Shown here in pieces: positions 4,646-39,857 of a DNA stretch of 40,598 nucleotides (position 1 is the first letter of the stretch; every line of letters starts with the position of its first letter). The position numbers and the translations under genes are program-made. The stretch covers positions 20,575 through 61,172 of the forward strand of contig JAWQFM010000036.1 in the NCBI GenBank assembly GCA_033442325.1, read 5' to 3'. The notes under the pieces are model-generated. The model did no database searches. It saw only the letters and a program-made list of their open reading frames with translations, and was not told the origin of the DNA. Origin of the DNA: Salpingoeca rosetta. Taxonomy: Eukaryota; Protista; Choanoflagellata.

Positions 4646-6211
4646 GCATGTGAGCTGCACAGCTACGCTGCTGCACGAGATACAACAGCAGCAACACCAA
4701 ACACCCTCAGCAACAACAGCAACACATGCACCATGTGCAATCCAAAGCATCCATGATGGGCCCACCTTGCCTTGCTAACATGTGGGAACACTGCATGAAC
4801 ACAACAGCGGCAGCTGAATCGGGGAAGTTGCAGCAGCAGCAGTCGGCATGCGAGCCCACTTCCATCAACATTGTGATGTGTGCTGGCACCTCACCACCTG
4901 TGTGTGTGCGTGGTTGCAGGGAATGTGAATGGGAATAGAACACAACAGACACAGAGCAAGCCATCACGTCAGCACAGCAGAAGAAGTGAGTGACATCACA
5001 CGCACCACGTGTGTGCGTGTGTATGTGTCGGTGTGTGTCCATCATCCCCCCATCAACCCTCTTCCTTGTTCATTTCATCGCACCCCATCACCATCACAGC
5101 CCCATCACACAACCAACAACCACTCATCATCACCCACATGCCATGTGTGAGGCGAGTGCAGCTGGCACGCGTGGCAAGTATCCTCGACATTCCCTCATCC
5201 TGTTGCCTGTGCGTGTGCATCACCTGTAAGTGTGGTTGTGTGCGAGCACCAGCATGGTGAGTGAGTGGGAGGGAAGAGGGAGTATGGATATGTGCGCAGC
5301 CACACTGCTACTGCCACTGCTGGTGTTGTGCATGCAGGTGTGAAGAACAAAGGGAAGAGAGAGACAACTGAAAACAGAAGGGAGGGAACAAGACATGCTG
5401 CACCCCATCCTTCCTTCCATCCCTCTTCCTCACACCACCACCACACACCACCATCCTCTGTCACCAGCCAGCCACCACACCACACCACACCACATCACAC
5501 TCACCCAGCATCCCCCACCCCCACCTCATCCATCCATCCATCCATCCAACACACATCTCCTCTCCGTTTCCCCTCTTCTTCTCGCCCTCACCTCTGCTGC
5601 TGCTGCTGCTTCTCGCCGAAAATGCAACTTGTGCTGTCGGCACCTGTTCCCAGCTGCAAACAGCCAGCCAGCTTCCGCCAGCAGCAGTGGGCGATGGGTT
5701 GGTTGGTTGGTTGGTTGGCTGGTTGGTTGGTTGGGGGATGTGTTCAGCAGCAAGTGGTGGTGGTGCATTCTCTGCTGCTGCTGCTGCATCGGCGGTGGAG
5801 GGTGTGTTGGCTGCTGCTGCTGTTGTTGTTGTTGTGATGGCCGTCAGGGAGGGCGAGAAAGAGAGGGAAAGATAAGCAGCGGCTGCAAGGTGGAGAATGT
5901 GTAGGTGTACATGCGGTTGTGTGTGAGAACGAAGAATGAGACAGCGCATTAAGCAGAGCAAAGCAGGCAGCCGCACCACACACATGTACACGTTGGTTTC
6001 GGACAACAAGGGGAGACAGGAACAGCAGAGACAGCGACCACAACCACAGCACACTGGTGCGGTGCTCATCACATCAACACGCACATGCAGTGCTGCACTC
6101 ACGTTGTTCATCGCTCGCTTGCTTGTTTGTGGTGTGGTGTGTGTTGGTGCTGCTGCTTCCACAGCCGCACAAGCGTGGCTGGATGGTCATCACATGGCAG
6201 CGCCCGTCTGT

Positions 6212-11557: not shown

Positions 11558-12627
11558 CGCTGCATTCGCTGCGACGAAAGGAAAGGATGTATGGGGAGGT
11601 GCGGTTTGGTCACACTCAGCCACAACAACAACCACAACAACAGCAGCAGGGAGCAGCAGGGAGCAGGGGGATATTGATGATGATGACAATGACACATGCA
11701 ATCCATCAATCAATCAATCAAGCAGACGAGCAAGCAGGCAAGCGAGCAAGCAAGCCAAACAAAGGGACATGTGTTCATTCACTCCGCTTGGACGAGCGAC
11801 ACGCCCACCACGTGGTGCGTGCGTGTGTGTTGTACTCACTGCTCTGCCCTCCTTTACACGGTTCCTCCCTGCCTCGCAGTCCTCTCTCCCTTTCTTTCCT
11901 TTGCACACCCCTTGCTTGACCTGCTCTCTGCACACCCTCTCTTCTCCACTCCCCCCCCCTCACTCACACGTCTCAAGTCACCTCCCTCTCACCCCCTCCC
12001 CCTTTGCCTTTGGCTGCAACGCTGTGCGTCTTCATCTTCACCACCACCATCTGTGTTGCAGGCTGACGATGATGGTGGCTTGAATGACAGCACCGTGTCC
12101 TTGAGCGGGTGCCATCACCGTGTGCCACGACAACAAGAGGCACTACCTTTTCTCTCGCTCTGTCTTGGTATGTGCATGGCTGATGGGGTGGGGGGTGTTG
12201 CCTGGGATTTCCACTCCACTGCACTGCACCTCAATCTCAATGTGCTGTGTGACGCGACATGCACACCACAGTTTGCACGCCTCCTTCCCCCACTTATCCC
12301 CTCAGCACGCCCTTGTTCTTGTCAGCCACACCCCACATCTCCCACACACTCTCTCTCTCCCCCTTGCCCCTGTCACGATGTGTGCTTGCTTCAGCAGGCC
12401 GCTGACATTGTCATCACCGCTGTCAGACTGTGGTCGGTGCCATGCACGGGCATGGAGACAGTGAGCCAGCTCGTGGTCTCCAGCGTGGTGGCTGGAATGT
12501 GCACTGAGGTGAAGGATCCCACCACCACACTTCCGCTTCCATGCCGCCATGGCTGACACCACTGGCACTGCTGGTTGACACGCACCAGCAGGCATCGCTC
12601 CCAGCGCCACACAAGAGGTGTGTGTGG

Positions 12628-12708
<81 letters not shown>

Positions 12709-12806
12709 TGAACATGTGTGAACATGTCGCTTCGTCGCTTCTCTCCTTTCTCCACTTTCGCCTTGCCAAGCCTCACCGCTGCCCCTTGTCGTCCTGCCGC
12801 GTTCAG

Positions 12807-12934
12807 GCTGTTGAGGCGCTGCTCGCTGTGATCCAGGGTGCCCGGCTCCCGCGAATCGCCCAACACCAGCGCGACCGAGAACTGCATCTCCGCCTTTGTC
12901 AAGATTGCACGCAACCCAGCACACGGCCTCTCAA

Positions 12935-13008
<74 letters not shown>

Positions 13009-13824
13009 TGCTACACTCCTTCTTCGCCGTCCTTTTTGCTTTGGTTGTTTGCTCTTGTTGTCACGTTTTCGTCGCTTATTCTTGACCTCCTCATCCACCC
13101 ATCTACTACCAACCCTTGCACAGACGAGATGCTGACGCATCTGCTTGACTGGCTGCCCATTACAGAAGACGACGATGAAGCAAAGTGCATCTACACATAC
13201 CTCGTCGAGCTCTTTTAAGCGTGAGTGCTACCACTGTGTTTTGTGAGTGTGTGTGTGTGTGTGTGTCTATGTGTGTGTGCATGGCCTGGTCGTGCTGCAT
13301 GTGTCGGTGGTGTGCTCTGTCGCCTGTCGTTCTTGTTCCCGACTGACTCTCCCGTCCCCCTCCTCATTGCTTCCTGTACCTCCCTCTCCTTCCTTTTGTT
13401 GTTGCTTCTGTAGGCAAGATCCACGCGTGACCGCGCCTGAGAGCCCGGTGAAGATTGTGCGTGCATTTGTTTGTGCAGGTGGTTGGCACCCCCGCGGCCG
13501 CCGTCGACGAGCCCCACTGCCAGGGCATGTACACAGCCTCATGGTGCGTGGGTTGTGTTGTGTGTGATTTATGTGATGTGTGTGTGTGTGTTTGCTGCCT
13601 CGAAGATGCGCGATTGTCGTGTACTTCGTGTACTTTCCCATCCTCTTCCTCCCTCTTCCTCCCTCCTCCTCTTTCCTCTCCTCATTCTCACGCCCTCGTG
13701 TCGTTTCCTCTCGTAGAACATGCAGGATTCGCCTGCCCACGGTGTGTTGGGGCAGTTGATGCAGGATCCCGAGGCGCACGCCCGCGTGCAGCGCGCTGTT
13801 GAGGCGCTTGGCTCGTCCACATAG
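12807..13824 (+). pseudogene. IPO5: C-terminal fragment of importin-5/karyopherin beta-3 (IPO5/Pse1-like), disrupted
   Basis: Exon 12807-12936 gives VEALLAVIQ/VPGSRESPNTSATENCISAFVKIAR, with a frameshift at GGG 12836-38. Exon ~13124-13220 gives EMLTHLLDWLPITEDDDEAKCIYTYLVELF followed by TAA (13216-18). These match the importin-5 motifs NATENCISA and WLSWLPLxEDxEEA. Later exons at ~13414-13543 and 13718-13824 end in TAG. No N-terminal importin exons were found upstream. Confidence 0.8.
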
Positions 13825-14587
13825 TCGCCATGTTGTGATGTGTCGTGTCAACTTGTGCACCAGTTGAACGAATGGCTGAATGTCTGTCGGTTCCTCTGTC
13901 GCATTCCTCTTGTTTCCGTTTCTTGCTCTCTTCCCTCTTCTTCTCTTCTCTTCTTCTGTTCTGTTCTTCCCTTCCTTCACTCTCCCTCTCGCCTGCCTGC
14001 TTGCTTGCTTGCTTATGTCACGCCCTTCTTGTGCTTGCCTGTTCTTTTCATTGTATGGCGCTGTGTACGGCTGAACACGTTCTTGGTGTGTTTGGTGGAT
14101 GTGTGCTGCTGCTGCTGCTGTGCGTATTTGATTCTGGCTTGTGACTGGAGGGTGTTGTTTGATGTGCAGAGGGGCTGGCTGTTGTTTGGTTGGCTTGGCT
14201 TCATGTTGCGTTTGGGCACTGTGTGTGTGTGGATGTGTGTTGGGAGCGTTGTTTGTGGGTTGTGTGGCGGACCTGTTCTTTCCTCAGTAAATGGCTCGAT
14301 GACGATGATGAGATCCGTTGACGGTGATGATGGTGGAGCGGCGGTGATGTTTGTGGTGTTGATGTGGCTCCAGACATTGGTGTGTTGTACCGACCAGGCA
14401 AGGCCAAGCCAGGAAGGAGCGGCTGTTGTTCCTTTTGGCGACAAAGCGAGTCGGGTAGTTGTTGCCGGCTGGCTGGAGGCACTTTATCCTGTGTGTTTGT
14501 TGTGTTCCTGTCGACAACGAGGGCTCGAATGAGATTGTTGACGAACATCTTCCACGGAAGCGCTGCTGTGCGGATAACCTCTGTAAG

Positions 14588-14622
14588 GTTTTGCGAATCG
14601 TCCAATGGCTGAGTCGCAAAAC
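14588..14622. promoter_or_regulatory. Inverted repeat enclosing a CCAAT box ~140 bp upstream of the ROCO start codon
   Basis: gttttgcgaatc-gtCCAATggct-gagtcgcaaaac: 12-bp arms with 1 mismatch and an 11-nt spacer containing CCAAT. Function is inferred from position only. Confidence 0.4.
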
Positions 14623-14760
14623 AACAACACACAAACAAAACAAACAAAGAAGAAGGAAAACAAACGAAGCAGCGCGTTAAGTTGTCGTCCTCCATTTTGT
14701 CGTCTTCTTCCAGAGCACGTCACAACAAGCCACAAGGAGAAAAGACGACGCGCTGTCGCC

Positions 14761-17700
14761 ATGTCCGGCGGAGAGAAGAGAGCGAGGGAGGAGGTGGAGG
14801 CGTTGCTGGCGCAGACGAAGCTGACGGATCGAGTGAAGAATAAGATCAGGGCCATCGCCAACAACACGTGTGGGGACAATGTGGGGTGAGTGCAAAAGCA
14901 ACCAAAACGACGTGTTGCAACATGCATGCCTGCATTGGACACAAGGCCACTTCTTGTGGTTGTGCTTGTGCTTATTCTTCCCCCCCCCCTCTCTCTCTCT
15001 GCTTGGCTTGTCCTTGTGTTGCAATGAGCTTGGTGTGGCTTGCTGTTGGGTGTTCACGTGTGCGTGTCCTGTCCCCTCGCACCACCTGGACACATCAACA
15101 GAGAGTGTGTGTGCGTGTGTGTTTGTGGCAGGTTGTGACTGGCACCCTCATGGTTTTGCTCTGTGTATCCTCAGTCTTCTTGCTCATTTCATGACACACA
15201 CCATTTGAAATTACAGCTTGAATAATGATGGCCTCGGCGTCATTGGGGCGCGTGCGGTGGCCAAGGCGCTCAAGGACAACACCTGCCTCAAAACGCTCTT
15301 GTGCGTGGTGATGATGAATCTGCATCGTGTGACATGCATGGTTGATTGGGATGGCGGTGTTGCATGTTGCACCCCTTTCTCCTCCCCTGCTTGCGCATGT
15401 TTGGACGTGTGTTCACCGTCGCTCCCTGCGGTTCTTGTGTGTCTGCACAGCCTGCACAACAATTCCATCGGCGATGAGGGCGCCGTGGCGTTGGCGGAGA
15501 TGCTGAAGCACAACACGGCCCTCGAAGAACTCAAGTGAGTGTGGACACGCACACACACACACACATGTATGCTGCGTCACTGCCGTTGCACCTTATCACG
15601 TGCACATGTGTGGCTGATGGGGTGGGGTTCAACGACTGTGTTGCCACCCACAACAATCATCATCACGCACTCACTCACTCTTCCTCATCCATGTGGCATC
15701 ATCGCCCTTCGTGGCATTATACCATCTGGACAGCCTGCAAAGCAACTCCATCGGCGATGAGGGCGCTGTGGTGTTGGCGGAGATGCTGAAGCACAACACG
15801 GCCCTCGAACAGCTCTTGTGAGTTTGAACACACACGCATGCACGAAGGCACCCGCTTTGAGCATGTGTGCATGTGGTTGTGCACGTCTGCAGCAGGCGCG
15901 CTGGCTGTTTGCCACCCCATGTGCTCGCCGCCCCCATCCCTCCTGCTCACCACCGCGTATGCTGTCACTGACCTCCCACTCCTCACTCCTCTCTCTTGTG
16001 TGTACACAGCCTGATGAGCAACCGCATCGGTCCTGAGGGCGCTGCGGCGTTGGCGGAGATGCTGAAGCACAACACGACCCTCGAAGAACTCTAGTGAGTG
16101 TGCACACGCACACACACACATGTATGCTGCGTCACTGCCGTTGCACCTTATCACGTGCACATGTGCCCATGTGTGGATTGATGACTGTGTTGTCACCCAC
16201 AGCAATCATCATCACGCACGCACTCACTCTTCCTCATCCATGTGGCATCATCCCCCTGTGTGGCATTATACCATCTTGACAGCCTGAGTGAGAACTCCAT
16301 CGGTCCTGAGGGCGCTGTGGCGTTGGTGGAGATGCTGAAGCACAACACGACCCTCACATGGCTCGGGTGAGTGTGTACACGCACACATGCACACATGTAT
16401 GCTGCGTCACTGTCGTTGCACCTTATTACGTGCACATGTGCCCATGTGTGGATTGATGACTGTGTTGCCACCCACATCAATCATCACGCTCTTCCTCACC
16501 CATGTGGCATCATCCCTCTGCCTGGCACCATACCGTCTTGACAGCCTGGAACGCAACCGCGTCGGCGATGAGGGCGCTGTGGCGTTGGCGAAGGTGCTGA
16601 AGCACAACACGACCCTCGAAATACTCATGTGAGTGGAAGCTCCTCTTTGCAATGTGTGTCTTCAGGCGCTTCTTCTGCAGTACACATGTGCAGATCGAGG
16701 CACCGCAAGCCGCCCACGATGTCTGTGCGACATGCTTGTCCAACCAACAAATGCTTCCATCCTTCACCTGTGCCACAAGTGCTGCCACGTCTTGTGCAAT
16801 TTGCATTTTCCCCCTTCTCCCTTTGCTTCCGCCATTGTGACTTCAATGTCGTAGGACCTGATGTGCGAGCGAGTACACGTGCACGTGATCCATCTGCAAC
16901 CCACTTTCATCCATGACCCGTGTTGCTTGCCCACCCGTTCCCCCTGCTCTTCCAACATGCATTTCTTGCCACTTGCAGCTTGGATAACAACTCCATCACC
17001 CCGGTTGGCGGTGCGGCGCTGGGTGCCGCACTGGACGAAAACCGCACGCTGTCTCGGCTTGAGTACGTCAATTGCGTTGCGCCTGCCTCATGAACGCCTG
17101 TGTCCTGTTGTGGATTTGTGTGACCAATCGCCACTCTTTTGAGTGCACGCCACACTGCAGATCGAGGCACCGCAAGCCGCCCACGATGTCTGTGCGACCA
17201 TGCTGTCCAACCAACAAATGCTTCCATCCTTCACCTGTGCCACAAGTGGTGCCACGTCTGTGCAATTTGCATTTTCCCCCTTCTCCCTTTGCTTCCGCCA
17301 TTGTGACTTCAAATGTCGTAGGACCTGATGTGCGAGCGAGTACACGTGCACGTGATCCATCTGCAACCCACTTTCATCCATGACCCGTGTTGCTTGCCCA
17401 CCCGTTCCCCCTGCTCTTCCAACATGCATTTCTTGCCACTTGCAGCTTGGATAACAACTCCATCACCCCGGTTGGCGGTGCGGCGCTGGGTGCCGCACTG
17501 GACGAAAACCGCACGCTGTCTCGGCTTGAGTACGTCAATTGCGTTGCGCCTGCCTCATGAACGCCTGTGTCCTGTTGTGGATTTGTGTGACCAATCGCCA
17601 CTCTTTTGAGTGCACGCCACACTGTGTGTGTTCCTCTCTGCTTGCTTGCATTTCTCCACAACCCTAACCACCAACCCTCCTGACCCACACACCACACTTG

Positions 17701-19123
17701 CTGCTTGTTCCCAACCACACGCTACCACCACATGTCCTCGTTCAGCATCGAGGAGAACTCCACCGCCACCGCCCGCGCCTTTGGTGCCGCGCTGCCCGTC
17801 GACCGAGAACTCAACACAGACTGGTCAGTCAACGCGTGCTTCCACTCTAGTCGTTCGCTCCTTGCCTTCTCTCGACCCTTCTCCTCACACACACACACAC
17901 GCTGCATGATGCTTGCGTTTAATTTTGCGTGAGATCACAGGGGTGATGACCGTGAGGGCAACGCCGCCTTCGATGAAGCACGCAAGGAGAAGAAACGACG
18001 ACACCATGAGCAACTGTTTGCCGCCTGCAGGGATGGCGACGCTCCAGCTGTCACGTCCCTCATCGAACAGGACAATGCAGATGTCAACCAACATAATGAA
18101 CAGGTATGTGCATTGTGTGTGTTGTGCTTGTATGTGACGGCGCTCGCTCATGGTTGCACCGGCCGTGTGTTCGTTTCCAACAGATCCTCACCACACGTGC
18201 CATGCCCCTTGCTTGCCCCACCCAATAACAGGGCGACACGCCGCTGCACGTTGCCTGCAGGCACAACCAGCCCGCCGTCGTGGAGCTACTCCTGAAGAAG
18301 GGCGCAGACACTGCCGTCAAGAACAAGAAGGTGTGCTTCGCGTCGTGTTGCTGTTTCTGAAGACGTGACACAACTGCTTCTTTGCTTTGCGCTGTGCCCC
18401 CCCCCTCTCCCTGCTTCCCTCCTTCCTCAACTCATGCGTTTTACCTTTCCAACACACGCAGGGAGAGACGCCCTATGATGTGGCACAAGCCAGCGGTCAT
18501 ACTGCCATCACCAGCATCCAAGGGCTGAAGTCAGGCGGCAAACCCCAGCAACAACCACAGCAACAACAGCAGCCAAAACAAGAGCCACCTGCGCCCACTC
18601 CTGCCGCCGGACCGAAGCAAGAAGAACAAGCAGCGCAAGACGTGAGTTATCAGAAGAGTGCTTGCCAGCAACGCACAAGCAAATGCATCACGTCACCCAT
18701 ACCATTCCTTCATCACGCTCTCCCTGGTCTCGTATCAAGCATAATCATGATGTCTCACACAACCATCACCACCGCCGCGACCAGCACCACCATCAGCAGC
18801 AGCCCGAACAGGCGCGCAGGGAGCGTCTCCAGCAGCGCATGCGGGAGGTCATAGCACGCTTCAACGCGACCATGGCGGGCAGGGCCAAACTCATCTTCAT
18901 TGGTCAGGGGCGCGCCGGCAAGACTTCCACGTTCCACTCACTCATGGGTCACACCTTCAACAAGCATGAGCACTCCACGCATGGCGCCGCCTCAACCGAC
19001 CTCGCCGTCATTGTCGAATCAATGGACGTTCACGACTGGCAGGTGTGTGAGTGAAGCTGATGCGAGCATGTGATGTGTGCGACGCATGGGTGTGAAGAGA
19101 GGTGGTGGTTGACACGATCATCC

Positions 19124-19159
<36 letters not shown>

Positions 19160-19703
19160 GGAGCTGGATGCGGAGATCTCGGAGCTGATGCGCAGTCTCT
19201 GCGGCACGGCGCTGGCGCAGGAATCTGGCGTGGACTTGCAGATGAAGCAGGCGATGATGAAGGCGAAGGCGAACTTTGAGAGCCGCATCGCCCAACACCA
19301 TCAGCAACAGCGGCAGCAGGAATCTGATAAAACACCGAAAGCAGCGGCTGCCAAGCTGAAGCAAGGACAGTCACAGCAGTCAATGGAGACGCGGTCACGG
19401 CCATCATCCCGCACGTCGCCAGCGACTGTCCCAAAGCCCAGCAAGACGCCTCACATGTGTGCGTCTGCACCCAAGAAGCAGACCACCCTAAACCCTTCCA
19501 GCCAAAGTGATGCTGCTGCGCGTGACAACAGCACCACTGCCACAACCGGCATGTCTGCGGAGGAAATGGAGAAAGCGATCAAAGAGTTCAACGTGGACGC
19601 CGTCATGGGCGAGGGCAAAGCGCGCGTCACGTTCAAGGTGTTTGACCTGGGCGGCCAGTCCACCTTCTACATCTTCCACCCTTTCTTCCTCACCAAGTGA
19701 GCC

Positions 19704-19749
<46 letters not shown>

Positions 19750-22700
19750 GGCCTCCTCACTCACTCACCCCAATATATTCCAACCCCCCCCCCCACCACA
19801 CATACAACCCACACCAGGTACGCGGTGTACCTGCTGGTGTTCTCCATGGAGGACCTGTTGCACGAAGACGAGAGCCATCGGGCAGAGGCGTGGGAATTTA
19901 TGGAGCACTGGCTCTCCTCCCTCCACCTCCACGCCAAGGGCGCACCCGTCCTCATCGTGGGCACCTTCGCTGACAAGATCAACGAGAGGAAGCAGCACGA
20001 GAACATCTCACGCGACATCTACAGCCGCCTGCGCCACAACCCCGCTTTCCCTGGCGTCATCCACAACGACAAGCATGGCCTGTGGTTCTGGCCTGTCGAC
20101 AACACCAAGTCCATCAATGACCCCATCATCCAGGACCTGCGCCAGACCATCTCCTCCACAGCACTGGCGCAGGAGTACGTGAGCCAGGAGGTGGCGGTGC
20201 CGTACCTCCACCTCTACGACAAGCTCAACGCCATCGCCCGCGACGAGCAACGGCCACTGCTCACGTTTGATGAGGTGGTGCAGATTGCGCGCACGTGTGG
20301 GCTGCGCACACGTGAGGAGACGAAGGCCTGCCTCCAATTCCTCCACCTGTACTCGATGGTGCTGTACTACGACCACGTGCCAGGCATGGAGGATTTCGTG
20401 ATCCTGAGCCCGCAGTGGGCGGTGGATACAATGACCCGCGTCATCCGTAACTTTGACCTGCACCACGACGTGCGTGATGGTGCGGCGAGGGCCGTTGGCG
20501 CGCAGCTGTGGGACGACCTCGTTGACCGCGGCATCCTGCACCGCCGTCTACTTGATGTGCTGTGGAGGGACTTGGAAGGTGGCATGGTTGAGCCCTTTCT
20601 CCAACTCATGATGGAGTACGGGTTGTGTATCCAGTACACAGCGCCAATGGTGCTGCTGTCCAGCCACCAACAGCAGCAACACCACCAGTACCTCGTCCCA
20701 GCCATCCTGCCGATGACGCTGGAGGATGAACAGGCGTCCTCGTCGGTCACGCTGAGCACGGCAGCAGCACAGCAGGCCAATCCATACGCTGGATATGAAG
20801 AGAAGACAGCCTACGTCGCCTTCAGCCTGAGAGAGTTCAAGAGGGGTGTAAGCGCCAAGATTGCAGACACGCAGCAAGCCTCTTTCCTGCCAGAGGGCCT
20901 GTTCCCGATGGTTCTGGCACGCGTGATGGCACACATGCAACACGGTGCAACGGAACCGCCCATGTTGAGCCGCACAGACGCCGTGATCTTCATGGATGCT
21001 GCTGAGATCGAGATGCAGCTCGTGCCGGCTGTTGGCGGCATCAAGATCAAGGTCATGACTGCACGTCCTCGCACGCTGCTGCACATGCTGTACGACACCA
21101 TCACAACAGCTGTCACGCAGCGCTACCCCGAGCTCAAGGCCACGTTGCTGCTGCCATTCAGTGACACGAGACTGCTGTTCTTCGAGGACGTGCACACCCA
21201 CCACATGACCCCTTACCCTAAAGGGCTTGAGAGCCTAAGGAGCACGGCAGCAGCACAGCAGCTCAATCCATACGCTGGATATGAAGAGAAGACAGCCTAC
21301 GTCGCCTTCAGCCTGAGAGAGTTCAAGAGGGGTGTAAGCGCCAAGATTGCAGACACGCAGCAAGCCTCTTTCCTACCAGAGGGCCTGTTCCCGATGGTTC
21401 TGGCACGCGTGATGGCACACATGCAACACGGTGCAACGGAACCGCCCATGTTGAGCCGCACAGACGCCGTGATCTTCATGGATGCTGCTGAGATCGAGAT
21501 GCAGCTCGTGCCGGCTGTTGGCGGCATCAAGATCAAGGTCATGACTGCACGTCCTCGCACGCTGCTGCACATGCTGTACGACACCATCACAACAGCTGTC
21601 ACGCAGCGCTACCCCGAGCTCAAGGCCACGTTGCTGCTGCCATTCAGTGACACGAGACTGCTGTTCTTCGAGGACGTGCACACCCACCACATGAACAAGA
21701 AAGCGCTTCGCGTTGGCCGCTCACAGCTGCTGTCACCAGGAGATCTGGTCGCCAAATATGGACCACTCTTGCCAGTTATGGGTCAGCAGGACAAATACGA
21801 TGCCTTCATCAGCTACAGGTGGGAATGTGTGAATGTGTGTGTGTGCATGTGTGTACATTGCGAACTGGGTGTCTTTCCTTCCCTCTCTCTCTCTCTCTCT
21901 TCCTTTCTCATCCCGGCATTCACCACCACGTCACAGGCAACGCGGCAACCGGGGTTTGGTGATGACCCTTCACCCAAGGTTGGAACAGCACGGACTGGTG
22001 ACCTTTGTGGACACCAACAACTTGGAGACAGGCGTCAACTTCAAGCATGCGTGCATGACAGCCCTGCACAACAGTGCTGTCGCCTGCCCCGTCGTCTCTG
22101 TCGGTGCCATCCATCAGATGCGCTCGCTCGGCCACAGTGACACGTGCGATAACGTGCTGTTGGAGTGGATGGCCATGCTGGAGTTGCAGCAGCTTGCTCG
22201 CCAGCACCAGGACCAGATCCGCCTTCGCCGCATCGTCCCGCTCTTCGTTGGCAGTGGCTGGCACGACAGCAACCACCATGTTATGAGCGCGGCGGAAGTG
22301 AGCGAGTACGACTCGTTTGACCGCCTGAAGCGGCTGGCAACGAAGCTGCCGGATGTTGTGAGCAAGAACACGACGTCAGCGCTGGACCAGTACTTTTCAC
22401 AGGTGCTGCGCCTGCCACCCCCACAGCAGCACAAGAGCGTGCGTGAAGTGGTGCTGTCGCTATTTGACGTTGATGCGGTGATTGCGGTGGATGCCGGCGT
22501 GGACCGCACGTCGCAGCTGCGCGAAATTGCAGAAAAGGTGCGCCAGGTTGTCGTCTCTGCCAGGAGCGAGGAGCAAGCAGCTCAGGAGCCAGCAGCTGCA
22601 CGTCGTTCCACGCAGGTATGGTTTTGTGTGTCTGCAGATATGCAAGCGTGCGCTTCTCTCTTCCACTTGGCACGCGTGCTATGTCTCACTCAACCCCTCT

Positions 22701-23018
22701 TTCCCATCTGTCCTGCAGTCATCTTCCTCGGTCTCCACCGCTACCACTCCTGTTACACCACCACCTGCCTCCTCATCGTCCTCCTCATCTTCGCCATTTG
22801 ATCCCGAGTTACTTGAATGGCTCAATCGCCACTCGCTGCTGCCGCACGTCGAGTCCGCCCTGGTTGAGCACGCTATCGACGATCTTCACGTGCTGGTGGC
22901 GCTCGTTCAAATGGGGGAGCTGACCATGCAGATCCTCAAGGCATCTGGTGTGCCAATGGGTGCTGCCTTCAAGCTGATTCGGGAGGCAAAGAAGTGCGAC
23001 GTGGACAGTTCTGTGTAG
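14761..23018 (+). CDS. ROCO-family LRR-ankyrin-Roc GTPase-COR-TIR-SAM protein (~1696 aa, 18 exons)
   Basis: Exons: 14761-14885, 15217-15300, 15451-15534, 15734-15817, 16010-16093, 16283-16366, 16545-16628, 16979-17062, 17446-17529, 17746-17823, 17941-18103, 18232-18330, 18462-18641, ~18785-19042, 19161-19696, 19818-21818, 21937-22615, 22719-23018. All are GT-AG and sum to 5091 nt, open to TAG. Motifs: RNI/NLRC3-type LRRs (LxxNxIGDEGAxALAEMLKHNTxLxxL); ankyrin GDTPLHVAC...LLLKKGAD; Roc G1 GQGRAGKT, G2 STHG, G3 DLGGQ, G4 VGTFAD; COR (LQFLHLYSMVLYY..VILSPQW, YLVPAILP, FLPEGLF); TIR YDAFISYR...TFVD...LETG...DNVLLEW; SAM WLNRHSL...GVPMGAAFKLI. Confidence 0.92.
15217..17529 (+). repeat. Array of eight 84-nt LRR exons (28 aa each, all phase 2), several with homologous introns
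   Basis: Each exon is exactly 84 nt and starts with C after AG. The introns following the exons at 15451, 16010 and 16283 share long near-identical sequence (gtgagtgtg..catgtatgctgcgtcactg.cgttgcacctta..acgtgcacatgtg...catgtggcatcatc...gacag). Confidence 0.92.
16689..17624 (+). repeat. ~467-bp tandem duplication containing an identical LRR exon
   Basis: 16689-17155 is repeated at 17156-17624. Exons 16979-17062 and 17446-17529 are identical, and the few differences lie in the first ~170 bp of the unit. Confidence 0.92.
20754..21694 (+). repeat. In-frame 455-bp tandem duplication within the large COR exon, separated by a 31-nt unique filler
   Basis: 20754-21208 matches 21240-21694 (offset 486 nt = 162 codons) with about 3 substitutions. 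The filler at 21209-21239 is ccccttaccctaaagggcttgagagcctaag. Confidence 0.93.
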
Positions 23019-28950: not shown

Positions 28951-31461
28951 ATTTGTACATTAGTGTGTATGTGTGTAAGTGTGTGCACTTGCGCATGAGT
29001 GTGTCTTTGGGGAGGGGGCATATGCACTTTGTTTTCTCTGTGCTCCTTAATACATGTCTCTTCACACGTGTGCGCGTGCCGAGTTACTCCAACCAGCTTG
29101 CATCAGCTCACAATTCAGCTCACCACTCACCGTGCCATTACCGCCTGCCCCATCCAACTTGATTTCCTTGTCTCGCGCAGGCGCGGTCTTTGACGTGGCC
29201 GTTTCCCCCGATAACACAATTGCGCTCTCTGGGTCGCAGGATGACACAGCGGTACTCTTCAACCTCAAGGACGGAAACATCATCCACACATTCGACAGTG
29301 CGTTTTTGCCACCTATGTCACGCATGAGCTGCACGGCGTCCCCCTTGCGTTCATGATGAATTGACTGTCTGTAAAGGCGTCACAGCCTGCAACAACAGCT
29401 ACAGCTTGCGACAACCTGCGACAGCCTTCAGCAGCATGAAACAGCCCACTGCAACCCACCTGCAGATTGCCACCGCGCCAAGAACAAGAGCCACCATCAC
29501 TCATCCTCCTCCTCCTCCTCCTCCCCTTCTGTCTGCTGCCTCTTCTTGCCGCGTGTATGTGCATGTGTGCGTGCGTGTGTGCATGTGCACGTGTATTTTT
29601 TTTTTGTGTGTGTGCGTGTGTATTCTGCAGACCATCACGACAGCATCATTGCCACGGCATTTTCACGCGACGGCGCCTTCTTCGCCCTCGGATGCATGGA
29701 CGGCAGTGTCAGGTGAGCCCATGGCACTCCAACCACCAACTACCACCACCACGAGCACAGAATTGCATTGCCTGCGCTGTGGCAACGCCACGTTGATGAC
29801 CCGTCTCCAGCTCGCGTGCGTGCATGCGTGCATGTATGCGTGTCAGTCATCAACAGTGCCTGGTACAGTCCTCTCACGTCCGTTATTCCCCGTTCCTCCA
29901 CCACTCTACACCATGATCCCCATCACCACATATCACCGCCGTCAGCGTGTGGTCCAACAAGTGCGAGAAGCTGCTGGATCTTGATCTCGGCGATGATCTC
30001 ACGGTAAAGCGAGAATGCGTCTATGCATGCGCCCGCTATGCTGTACTTTCTGTTTGATTGGTTGTGTGTGTGTGTGCATGCTATGGTGTCTCGCATGTCT
30101 TGTGTTCCTGTCCAATTCGTGTTGCTGCTTGCTCACCAATAGCGCCTTGTTCGCACTGCTCGTCCCCCTCTCCCTCTCCCTCGCTCCCCTCACACACCCT
30201 CTCACATACACACACACTCTCTCTTTCTCTTGTTCGCGTCCTTGCTTCTTCTTTCTCTGCAGTGGATGCGCTTCCACCCGGTTGCGTCATTTTTGCTTGC
30301 AGGCTCCGCCTCCGGGGGCGTGGTCATGTGGGCGGTGCCCAGCGGCACCATGTTCAACTTCTTTGGCCACGGCGTGAGTGGCAGCATGTGTGTGTGTCTG
30401 TGTCTGTGTCTGTGTGTGTGTCTGTGTCTGTGTCTGTGTCTGTGTGCGTGTGCATGTGTGTGTGTGTGTGCACGTGCATGCGCTTGCTTGCATGAATGGT
30501 TGCTTGCGCACGCGTGCTCGTTTCTGTCATCAACTTCACTCCCTTCATTCCTGTCCGCCTCTTTGTGTATGTTCTCATCTCTACACTCCATCACCGCCTC
30601 CATCACCGCCTCCATCACCGCCGTCTGTCAGGATGTTGTGTCGTGCGGCGCGTGGTTCCCGAACGGCCGCGCGTTTGTGTCCGCCGGTGACGACGGCCAA
30701 CTGCTCGCATGGAGCCCGAAGACACGCGAGGTCACGTGCAGAATCGACGGTCCGTTCGCCCTCTCTTGTCTTGTCTTGTGTTGTCTTGTCTTGTCTTGTC
30801 TTGTCTTGTGTCATGTTGTCTTGTCTTGTCTTGTCTTGTCTTGTCTTGTCTTGTGTCGTGCTGTCTTGTCTTGCCTTGTGTCGTGTTGTCTTGTCTTGCC
30901 TTGTGTCGTGTTGTCTTGTCTTGTGTCGTGCTGTTTTGTGTATCGATGCAATCCATTGTGATTGGCCGTTGCGCCACGTGCCCTTGACATCACGACCTAC
31001 GCCTCAGCCCACACCGCTACCCTCTACTCACACCCCATCCCACACCACAACACCACCGCCACCGCCCTTCCTCCTCCCACCTCAACCCACATCCCCATGT
31101 CCATCTCCATGTCCAACCCCGCCGCCTGCACAGCCAAGACGCATCAGTTTCACCAAACCCCCGTCACCGCGGCCGCGTGCCATCCAGACAACATCCTCGT
31201 TGCCACCGGTGGGCCCGATGCCAAGGTCTGCCTCACCAGCACCAAGACGGGCAAGGTCGTGTCCGTGTTTGAGGACCACGGGGACGCGATTGAGGCTGTT
31301 GCCTTCTCCTCGTCGTCGCCGACGCTGCTTGCCAGCGGATCACTCGACGGCACCATCGTCGTGCGCAACCCAGCCACCAAGTTCAAGCTCGCCACACTCA
31401 AGCATGAGGTGTGGTGCTGTCTCTGTGTATGTGTGTGTGAGAGAGTGAGAAAGGTTTTGTA

Positions 31462-31492
<31 letters not shown>

Positions 31493-32109
31493 CTGTGTCT
31501 GTGTCTGTTTTTGTATGTGTTTGTGCGTGTGTGTGTTTGTGAATGTGTGTGAATGTGTGTGTGAATGTGTCTGTGTCTGTTTTGATGTGTGTGCGTCTGC
31601 CTGGGTTTGTTAACCCCCCCCCCCTCCTTGCGAAGCCTTCTCTCTTCACTTCACCCACTAACATCGCTCATCGTCTCCTCTCAACCTTTTAACTCCCCCC
31701 CCCCCCAATCTTACTCCTCAGGCGGCAATTGTGCAGTTGACATTCCACCCAACGCTGCCGCTGCTGTACTCGTGCAGTGCAGATGGCACGGTGCGCGTGT
31801 GGGATGCGCGCAACGGAGCAAGCATCCACACCTGCTATGGCCACACGGACGCTGTTCTCGGCTTTGCCATCTTCGAGTGAGTACCAGTTGTTGTTGTTTA
31901 AGTTGTTGTTGTTTCGTGGTGGTTGTTTCGTGGTTGCTGCTGCTGCTGCTGCAGTCATCTCGCCTTTGTTGTTGTTGTTGTTGTTGTTTCGTGGTTGCTG
32001 CTGCTGTTGTTTCGTGGTTGCTGCTGCTGTTGTTGTTGTGAACGGCCGATGTGTGCTGCCGTTGTGCGCGACTTGCTCCTCCGCATCTTACTCACACATC
32101 CCCCTCTGC

Positions 32110-39531: not shown

Positions 39532-39857
39532 CGACGACGACNNNNNNNNNNNNNNNNNNNNNNNNNNNNNNNNNNNNNNNNNNNNNNNNNNNNNNNNNNN
39601 NNNNNNNNNNNNNNNNNNNNNNNNNNNNNNNNNNNNNNNNNNNNNNNNNNNNNNNNNNNNNNNNNNNNNNNNNNNNNNNNNNNNNNNNNNNNNNNNNNNN
39701 NNNNNNNNNNNNNNNNNNNNNNNNNNNNNNNNNNNNNNNNNNNNNNNNNNNNNNNNNNNNNNNNNNNNNNNNNNNAGATGGTGCCGGCACTGGTGTTAAT
39801 ACCCTCGTTATCGTAAATCACTTTTTCTCACGTTACATTTTCCTCCCGATAGGGTGG

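Follow-up and report, generated by a model that had tools for sequence, protein, structure and literature searches.

A tandem array of one-repeat LRR exons with hypervariable ligand-facing codons in a Roc-COR/TIR gene of Salpingoeca rosetta

Related receptor systems

A receptor design with one leucine-rich repeat (LRR) per exon, in which fast evolution is limited to the ligand-facing codons, is known from the ROCO genes of brown algae and the NOD/NLRC genes of vertebrates, and is undescribed in the closest relatives of animals; our literature searches for such a family in choanoflagellates found nothing. We describe here a gene of this type in the choanoflagellate Salpingoeca rosetta, found in a window (the whole stretch of DNA analysed) of 40,598 nt. 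The LRR-ROCO genes of Ectocarpus and Saccharina, which have been proposed as immune receptors, likewise have an LRR sensor N-terminal to Roc-COR (PMC3341825, PMC11378527). They share with the S. rosetta gene the presence of one LRR per exon, array introns which are all in phase 2, a number of LRRs which varies by paralogue, inactivated LRR exons in introns and positive selection on concave-face positions, as judged in our case from pN/pS and intron divergence. Alternative splicing of LRR exons has been documented in Ectocarpus (PMC3341825, PMC11378527). On the other hand, the brown-algal exons have 72 nt and code for a 24-residue plant-type LRR, whereas those of S. rosetta have 84 nt and code for a 28-residue LRR of the ribonuclease-inhibitor (RI)/NOD type. 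The brown-algal proteins are plain LRR-Roc-COR, while the S. rosetta protein has a TIR domain and ankyrin repeats in addition. Further differences are the choanoflagellate lineage and the subtelomeric location.

Vertebrate NOD/NLRC genes (PMC6642158) also contain one 28-residue RI-type LRR per frame-preserving exon, with the exon border within the beta-strand; the likeness considered here is one of exonic modularity. Vertebrate NLR proteins have a NACHT switch and a CARD or PYD effector, whereas in the S. rosetta protein these are Roc-COR and TIR, respectively. Plant TIR-NLR proteins contain a TIR effector, a nucleotide switch and an LRR sensor, the same three-part logic as the S. rosetta protein. 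They belong to multigene families in which the solvent-exposed xxLxLxx positions are hypervariable and whose evolution proceeds through birth and death together with gene conversion. Nevertheless, the plant TIR is N-terminal and the switch is NB-ARC, whereas in S. rosetta the TIR is C-terminal and the switch is Roc-COR; LRR class and exon structure are also unlike.

A few other proteins share part of this organization. LRRK2 and MASL1 (MFHAS1) have ankyrin and/or LRR repeats N-terminal to Roc-COR, and the S. rosetta G4 region, VGTFADK, resembles the LRRK-type motif, VGTHLD. On the other hand, LRRK2 and MASL1 are single-copy, conserved and devoid of a hypervariable LRR face, and their output is a kinase or none, not a TIR. 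SARM1 is ARM-SAM-SAM-TIR, with neither LRR nor Roc-COR, while the S. rosetta protein has no SAM domain detected by Pfam. Lamprey VLR also have LRR cassettes with a variable concave face, framed by fixed capping repeats at both termini, but they are assembled somatically from non-coding donors, whereas the S. rosetta cassettes are exons of complete germline genes.

The gene PTSG_13103 and its LRR exons

The gene in the window is S. rosetta PTSG_13103 (100% protein match). Its annotated coding region (14761-23018, + strand, as are all features given here) has 16 exons and codes for a 1445 aa LRR-Ank-Roc-COR-TIR protein, according to exact exon mapping and Pfam. The first coding exon (14761-14885), which ends in phase 2, corresponds to the helical cap at the N-terminus of the LRR solenoid. 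The LRR exons come next, followed by a 78-nt exon (17746-17823) which codes for the capping repeat at the C-terminal end of the LRR domain. Three exons (17993-18509) contain the ankyrin repeats, residues 226-311 (Pfam Ank_2 1.4e-12, Ank 5.8e-10). The Roc GTPase domain (18875-20016; Pfam Roc 1.5e-16) is divided by a low-complexity insert; in its translation, the nucleotide-binding motifs GQGRAGKT (P-loop) and DLGGQ of the predicted GTPase are intact. COR-A (20203-20709; Pfam 2.4e-18) and COR-B (20875-21165; Pfam 1.7e-12) were detected in the open reading frame of the window. As COR directly follows Roc in the Pfam matches, this is a ROCO gene, and the comparison with Ectocarpus made in the original prediction is borne out, with the addition of ankyrin repeats and TIR.

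The TIR domain (21793-22255, residues 1112-1226) contains one intron and reaches 31.9 bits with Pfam TIR_2, the cut-off being 28. Its closest solved relative is the SARM1 TIR (E 5e-4). The alignment stops short of the catalytic helix, and the Glu of an LLEW motif lies at the expected catalytic place, outside the alignment. The last exon (22719-23018) codes for a Ser-rich linker and a helical tail of about 70 aa; no Pfam family, SAM included, matches residues 1365-1445, even at E 10. Neither NACHT nor NB-ARC has a Pfam match along the full protein. Judging from these domains, the protein lies outside the NLR (STAND) class, although it would be NLR-like in its working.

The LRR region consists of eight exons of 84 nt, bounded by AG/GT. 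Since each of them is open only in its base-2 frame, every intron in the array must be in phase 2. Each exon codes for a single RI/NOD-type LRR of 28 residues, with the LxxLxLxxN pattern (Pfam LRR_6 2.5e-16). In the AF2 model (pLDDT 92.6), three-residue strands recur every 28 residues and comprise exactly x3-L4-x5; each repeat also has a helix. The best fold matches of the LRR model (Foldseek) are the NOD2 LRR, which comes first with 32-39% identity, NLRPs and ribonuclease inhibitor.

Exon 1 (15217-15300) is of a "first" type, with a single copy in every paralogue of the subfamily. The five central cassettes follow: exon 2 (15451-15534; x7x8 HN, x2x3x5 EE-N), exon 3 (15734-15817; QS, EQ-F), exon 4 (16010-16093; MS, EE-Y), exon 5 (16283-16366; SE, TW-G) and exon 6 (16545-16628; ER, EI-I). 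Exon 7 (16979-17062), with the motif SITPVGGAALGAAL, is of a "last" type, of which every other paralogue has a single copy, and exon 8 (17446-17529) is its duplicate (100%). The original prediction had described all these exons correctly in number, length and phase, as well as the strings at the x positions and the junction residues N, F, Y, G and I. The core which it had proposed as common to the central exons, 48 nt long, is present in them with 1, 1, 4, 4 and 2 mismatches, respectively.

At the DNA level, the array is a tandem exon-plus-intron repeat with a period of about 262-283 nt, far above chance. The original prediction had noted that several neighbouring introns are near-identical: This is true for introns 2, 4 and 5, which are 88-93% alike, and for introns 6 and 7 (97%), but intron 3 (15818-16009) is unlike all of them in sequence. 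It is 71-77% like the cassette introns of two more diverged paralogues (L019 and L014), a likeness which marks the array as a mosaic.

It was also claimed that every exon junction creates a new binding surface, since the intron splits the codon of the beta-strand. The strand as a whole is indeed combined anew at each junction, x2, x3 and x5 coming from one exon and x7 and x8 from the next. On the other hand, the first base of the LRR exons is C in all eight exons of the window and likewise in the core cassettes listed (42 of 43), so the upstream exon alone nearly always fixes which residue the split codon gives. The idea of a new residue at each junction can be discarded, as exon base 1 is C in all but one of the cassettes listed.

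Splicing and duplications at the locus

RNA-type sequencing runs, analysed as Logan unitigs, contain joints at the predicted exon borders which are absent from DNA-type runs: The family is expressed, with splicing at those borders. As paralogues cross-map at 95% identity, depth and most joints are uninformative for PTSG_13103 itself. Of the eight LRR exons, the annotated PTSG_13103 protein contains only five: Exons 2, 4 and 8 are skipped, although intact, which leaves uncertain the array that is actually expressed from this gene. Exon mapping places the single "last" exon of this protein on exon 7, but exons 7 and 8 are identical, so it could equally be either. The skipped exon 4 is present in independent DNA-type runs, with contigs which cover 15803-16073 and 15780-16063 with zero mismatches.

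The absence of intact exons from the public protein might point to regulated alternative splicing of the symmetric cassettes, which would produce several isoforms from PTSG_13103 alone and could add to germline diversification. With 84 nt and phase 2-2 in every cassette, the frame is kept whichever subset is used. In addition, the model of L003, the other long array, uses four of at least ten cassettes, and precedents are reported for brown-algal ROCO genes and human NLRP3 (PMC11378527, PMC6642158). Against this, the models of eight short-array paralogues use all their genomic cassettes, and the skipped exons have canonical AG/GTGAGT sites with normal pyrimidine tracts. The RNA-type joints mostly have different letters at their x positions, and those which match sampled loci correspond to paralogues. 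De Bruijn assemblies collapse repeats with a 48-nt identical core, which would produce the same apparent skipping, so the annotated model may simply reflect a collapsed transcript assembly. We consider regulated splicing unlikely, although it deserves some weight.

Exons 7 and 8 are identical because both lie within a 467-bp tandem duplication (16689-17624; 2.0 copies, 98% identical), which doubles the "last" LRR exon. A second tandem duplication, of 486 bp and in frame, is found in COR-B (20754-21694; 1.9 copies, 99% identical); the annotated model splices out one of its copies as a 483-nt "intron" (21190-21672). Neither duplication is present in the sampled paralogues. The 467-bp duplication may be a real recent event or an assembly artefact. 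Both duplications might come from near-identical subtelomeric paralogues or reads which were mis-joined in the 454/Sanger assembly: They have similar sizes and 98-99% identity, are found solely at this locus, and the annotated model sidesteps both, one of them through an ad hoc intron within an open reading frame. Assembly gaps are also found in sister arrays and near 39.6 kb of the window. Nevertheless, arrays in this family grow precisely by tandem exon-plus-intron duplication, and some DNA-type depth is found over the second 467-bp copy, although unitigs cannot bridge the junction. An artefact is quite possible, though somewhat less likely than not.

The gene family and selection on its cassettes

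In the S. rosetta genome, COR-A has at least 53 matches; the core cassette (searched with a 29-nt piece of the core) has at least 120, while the reversed control gives 0. Most cassettes are found 13-80 kb from a contig end, and in contigs of known length the cassette clusters are 13-78 kb away from an end. They lie on the + strand at contig starts and on the - strand at contig ends, so that the 5' end of the gene points toward the contig end. We assume, following the genome paper (PMC4054682), that contig ends are chromosome ends; that paper mentions subtelomeric repeats in common, without these genes. PTSG_13103 is part of a paralogous block (12450-23018) which is common to at least eight other contig-end loci, according to tiled blastn against L001-L017. 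Mean identity is 80-96% per 150-nt tile, and the block comprises the introns as well as some 2.3 kb before the start codon.

The original prediction had pointed to the conservation of the introns which flank the variable exons. They are indeed conserved, but nothing points to an intron function, as the whole gene and its upstream region (about 2.3 kb) are 84-96% identical among paralogues: Introns are conserved because they belong to a subtelomeric block with about 90% identity. Functional intron elements, such as selector or docking sites for regulated splicing, are unnecessary, since conservation is even along the introns.

We have analysed paralogues at 20 loci, which include about 43 of the at least 120 central cassettes, about a third. 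Between the fixed first and last LRR exon types, the number of central cassettes varies from 1 to 8 (12 loci). Among the cassettes there are 35 combinations of variable patches, built from 25 different 5' patches and 30 different 3' ones. Cassettes are also born and lost: An intron of L016 contains the remnant of a dead cassette, and 81-nt variants are found in L017 and L019. Exon shuffling, as had been proposed, agrees with this picture, in which cassette number and order vary among paralogues and variable patches are reassorted; gene conversion would also fit.

The ligand-facing codons are x2, x3, x5, x7 and x8, at and beside the strands in the AF2 model. In 21 independent cassette pairs, whose choice by nearest flanks biases toward low intron distances, 161 of 294 x bases differ (55%), versus 421 of 3464 intron bases (12%) and 176 of 1470 scaffold bases (12%), with an odds ratio of 8.7 and a P of 6e-61. 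Among the 35 unique central cassettes, pN at x positions is 0.56, versus a scaffold pS of 0.23 and pN of 0.095; these pairwise values, like the intron comparisons, take neither recombination nor common ancestry into account. The first and last exons, which are positionally orthologous across paralogues, give the same result, with an x pN of 0.45-0.47 versus a scaffold pS of 0.08-0.13. In the Roc-COR exon of the same genes, pN is 0.055 and pS 0.27. Fast evolution is confined to the ligand-facing strand codons.

It might be argued that the x codons are simply unconstrained and drift neutrally, while purifying selection acts on the rest of the repeat and no diversifying selection is required. Surface positions of LRR strands do accept most residues, and pS inside the x codons is high and noisy (0.31-0.38). 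Nevertheless, neutral sites cannot outpace the neutral rate, and in the same pairs x bases differ 4.5 times as much as the flanking introns. The excess is about tenfold in pairs whose introns differ by 3-6%, and x pN is twice the synonymous divergence of both scaffold and Roc-COR exon. As the scaffold diverges at the intron rate, the contrast does not come from an unusually frozen scaffold. Neutral drift is therefore very improbable. Diversifying selection at the x positions, another element of the original prediction, is supported by a pN well above the pS of scaffold and Roc-COR exon and above an intron divergence of 0.12. Taken together, these sequence data support diversifying selection plus gain, loss and reassortment of cassettes.

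A putative receptor repertoire and its meaning

The original interpretation, in which diversifying selection plus exon shuffling or alternative splicing generates a receptor repertoire, is partly supported. In our opinion, the array is probably the domain with which a cytosolic NLR-like receptor senses its ligands; this receptor would have a Roc-COR switch in the place of NACHT/NB-ARC and a TIR output. The phase-2 intron cuts the beta-strand codon x5, so that each concave strand (x2 x3 L x5 / L x7 x8) is formed by the joined ends of two exons. PTSG_13103 would be one copy of a subtelomeric block which is repeated at many chromosome ends. Ectopic recombination, unequal crossing-over and gene conversion would hold scaffold codons and introns about 90% alike and, acting between and within copies, would gain, lose and reassort cassettes, while diversifying selection would maintain the differences at the five ligand-facing codons. 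The outcome would be an inherited (germline) repertoire of binding surfaces over dozens of genes. The ligands would be non-self or danger molecules, whose binding would switch Roc-COR, and the TIR domain would then signal, possibly through NAD+ cleavage by analogy with SARM1.

Diversity might also be created by programmed or somatic diversification within a clonal population, such as VLR-like copying, mutation of x codons or subtelomeric switching. Some pairs with near-identical flanks (2 differences in 180 bases) have 8 of 14 x bases different, and the genes are found in recombination-prone chromosome ends. But every cassette that we have studied belongs to a complete, spliced, conventionally inherited gene, donor-only cassette stores were not seen, and identical cassettes recur across genes, as ordinary gene conversion predicts. 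The differences listed for the read runs include no x-base change. Homogenised introns next to selected exons are also found in MHC genes. We thus find somatic diversification hardly credible and favour germline diversification.

A survey of choanoflagellate gene content (PMC6040629) did not detect LRR-containing NLR cytosolic sensors. This gap would be filled, through another switch domain, by a family with dozens of members, whose cytosolic LRR-Roc-COR-TIR proteins would have a hypervariable binding face. The same solution, symmetric one-repeat exons with variation focused on the concave face, would then have emerged in brown algae, in vertebrates and in choanoflagellates, at least three lineages which are distant from each other.

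A more speculative extension, which we consider rather improbable, is an NLR-like Roc-COR/TIR surveillance system of choanoflagellates, shuffled at chromosome ends so that clonal lineages differ, with an LRR module perhaps shared with animals. If the shuffling part is true, subtelomeric ectopic exchange of one-repeat exons would be fast enough to differentiate the receptor content of clones, and would be the counterpart, on the side of the receptors, of the var/VSG contingency families. If the part on descent is true, the 84-nt RI-type LRR exon module would be homologous with that of animal NOD/NLRC genes. In any case, genome editing and defined bacterial interactions are available in S. rosetta, which makes a receptor role directly testable, and the subtelomeric setting would offer a tractable model of how chromosome-end recombination and selection shape a receptor repertoire.

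Structure of the gene and its LRR exons

The open frames located 3' of the LRR array code for ankyrin repeats, a Roc GTPase, COR-A, COR-B and a TIR domain. The window ORF matches Salpingoeca rosetta PTSG_13103 at 100% identity, and this 1445-aa protein maps back to the window as 16 exons at 14761–23018. Pfam finds LRR_6, Ank, Roc, COR-A, COR-B and TIR_2 in the whole protein, with no match to NACHT or NB-ARC and no C-terminal SAM domain. The solved structure closest to the TIR domain is SARM1. The AlphaFold model of residues 1–260 is confident (pLDDT 92.6) and places a three-residue strand every 28 residues, at x3-L4-x5. In fold, it is closest to the LRR domains of NOD2 (32–39% identity), NLRPs and ribonuclease inhibitor. 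Further downstream, open frames at 30200–31600 show motifs like those of WD40 repeats, such as SAGDDGQLLAWSP and SGSLDGTIVVRN, which suggest a separate, intron-rich WD-repeat gene.

The LRR exon array is a genuine and strongly non-random feature. As originally noted, the region 15217–17529 of the window contains eight exons of 84 nt with AG/GT borders. The sole open frame of each one begins at its second base, so all array introns are in phase 2 and the gain or removal of any exon keeps the frame. Each exon corresponds to one 28-residue repeat: L-x7-x8-N-x-I-G-x-x-G-A-x-A-L-A-x-x-L-x-x-N-x-x-L-x2-x3-L, followed by the split codon x5. The junction residues first quoted match the window exons, and the 48-nt core described for the five central exons is found there with 1, 1, 4, 4 and 2 mismatches.

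At the DNA level, the array is a tandem repeat of exon plus intron, with a period of about 262–283. Introns 2, 4 and 5 are 88–93% alike. Intron 3 does not resemble them. It is 71–77% like the cassette introns of L019 and L014, two paralogues that are more diverged, which makes the array a mosaic. LRR exons 7 and 8 owe their identity to a 467-bp tandem duplication (98% identical) that contains both. Within the coding exon of COR-B there is a second, in-frame tandem duplication of 486 bp (20754–21694, 1.9 copies, 99% identical). The public gene model treats one of its copies as a 483-nt "intron" (21190–21672), and the segment is single copy in the sampled paralogues. The junctions of both duplications are absent from all sampled paralogues: They are either recent events or assembly errors. 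An N run at 39600–39800 is an assembly gap, which explains the low-GC bin at 39–40 kb; the window belongs to a gapped scaffold. Microsatellites of the (CA)n/(TG)n type are very common in introns and intergenic DNA of the whole window (for example at 13242–13279, 19127–19155 and 19706–19748), and they give rise to long spurious Cys-Val or His-Thr open frames.

A family near contig ends

We have searched the genome (55.4 Mb, 68 contigs) and found 53 or more matches to COR-A. For a 29-nt segment of the cassette core there are 120 matches, against none for the reversed control. On contigs of known length, all cassette clusters are located 13–78 kb from a contig end, and six further clusters, on other contigs, lie at 13–51 kb. 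Family genes are on the + strand near the start of a contig and on the - strand near its end, so that their 5' LRR end points to the presumed chromosome end. The S. rosetta genome paper reports that most telomeres share repeated subtelomeric regions, these genes are not described there (PMC4054682). When the window is tiled against eight paralogues, mean identity per tile is 80–96% from about 12450 across the whole gene, including introns and upstream DNA.

Twelve of the 20 sampled loci belong to the same subfamily as PTSG_13103. Their layout is fixed, with one "first" LRR exon, one "last" LRR exon and a variable number of central cassettes between them (1–8). Variants of 81 nt are found in L017 and L019. 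N runs, which are assembly gaps, cut cassettes in three sister arrays, L003 (G000:C13:1705894-1715893), L011 and L017, so cassette counts of long arrays are lower bounds; such gaps also account for the long "introns" of L003. In L016 (oriented position 4791–4874), the 542-nt intron preceding the last LRR exon contains a dead central cassette, truncated, with a 1-nt deletion and no donor site, which is evidence that cassettes are lost. Two internal ROCO paralogues, L002 (G000:C1) and L015 (G000:C6), also have 84-nt one-LRR exons, but their scaffolds have diverged strongly (pN 0.45), so the exon design predates the homogenised subtelomeric subfamily. No 84-nt LRR exons are found within 8 kb upstream of COR-A at seven other internal ROCO loci.

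Diversity of the concave face

A strand receives x2, x3 and x5 from one exon but x7 and x8 from the following one, so recombination in introns makes new strand combinations. To this extent a junction can yield a new surface, as had been proposed, but rarely through the split codon: Its residue is nearly always set by the upstream exon, since the first exon base is C in 8/8 window exons and in all but one of the 43 core cassettes listed. Among these 43 cassettes, 25 different 5' patches are combined with 30 different 3' patches in 35 ways. One 5' patch occurs with differing 3' patches, and conversely, which indicates that recombination takes place within cassettes, not just between them.

The five ligand-facing x codons are far more variable than the remaining (scaffold) codons. 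In 35 unique central cassettes, x-position pN is 0.56, compared with a scaffold pS of 0.23 and a scaffold pN of 0.095. The first and last LRR exons, which are positionally orthologous, give 0.45–0.47 for x-position pN and 0.08–0.13 for scaffold pS. In the Roc-COR exon of the same genes, to which x positions do not apply, pN is 0.055 and pS 0.27. When the flanking introns of 21 independent cassette pairs serve as the linked neutral standard, x bases differ in 55% of cases (161/294), intron bases in 12% (421/3464) and scaffold bases also in 12% (176/1470); for x against intron bases, the odds ratio is 8.7 (P 6e-61). In pairs with just 3–6% intron difference, 53% of x bases still differ. Relaxed constraint cannot push divergence above the neutral level. 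The best reading of these comparisons is therefore diversifying selection on the concave face, as the original prediction held. The "nearly invariant" core is present, but as scaffold and introns are conserved to the same degree, the uniformity of this core mainly reflects recent homogenisation.

Expression and relation to known systems

Joints at the predicted exon borders are seen in two RNA-type runs, which have zero coverage across several introns, and are absent from two DNA-type runs. The family is thus expressed and spliced at the predicted borders. Most of these joints differ from the window precisely at x positions, and two have been traced to paralogues in the sample: one links the first exon of L017 to its RW cassette, the other an SE..TAL cassette to a last exon. 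Unitigs cannot separate isoforms of PTSG_13103. Its annotated protein includes only LRR exons 1, 3, 5, 6 and one of the identical pair 7/8. The model of L003, the other long array, uses 4 of at least 10 cassettes, while every cassette is used in the models of eight short-array paralogues. The missing cassettes fit either exon skipping in long arrays or collapsed transcript assemblies.

Two known systems are similar. Brown-algal ROCO genes have one LRR per 72-nt phase-2 exon; these exons are shuffled and alternatively spliced, and concave sites are under positive selection (PMC3341825, PMC11378527). In human NOD/NLRC genes, each frame-preserving exon encodes a single 28-residue RI-type LRR and its border falls within the strand (PMC6642158). 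PTSG_13103 joins a ROCO switch, as in the former, to an exon module of the NOD type, as in the latter. To this combination it adds ankyrin repeats and a TIR domain, as a member of a subtelomeric family. The survey by Richter et al. found no member of the NLR family in choanoflagellates; TIR-Ank proteins are mentioned there just in passing (PMC6040629). In the literature searched, we have found no description of a choanoflagellate LRR-Ank-Roc-COR-TIR family. A role of the PTSG_13103 family as putative immune receptors is plausible.
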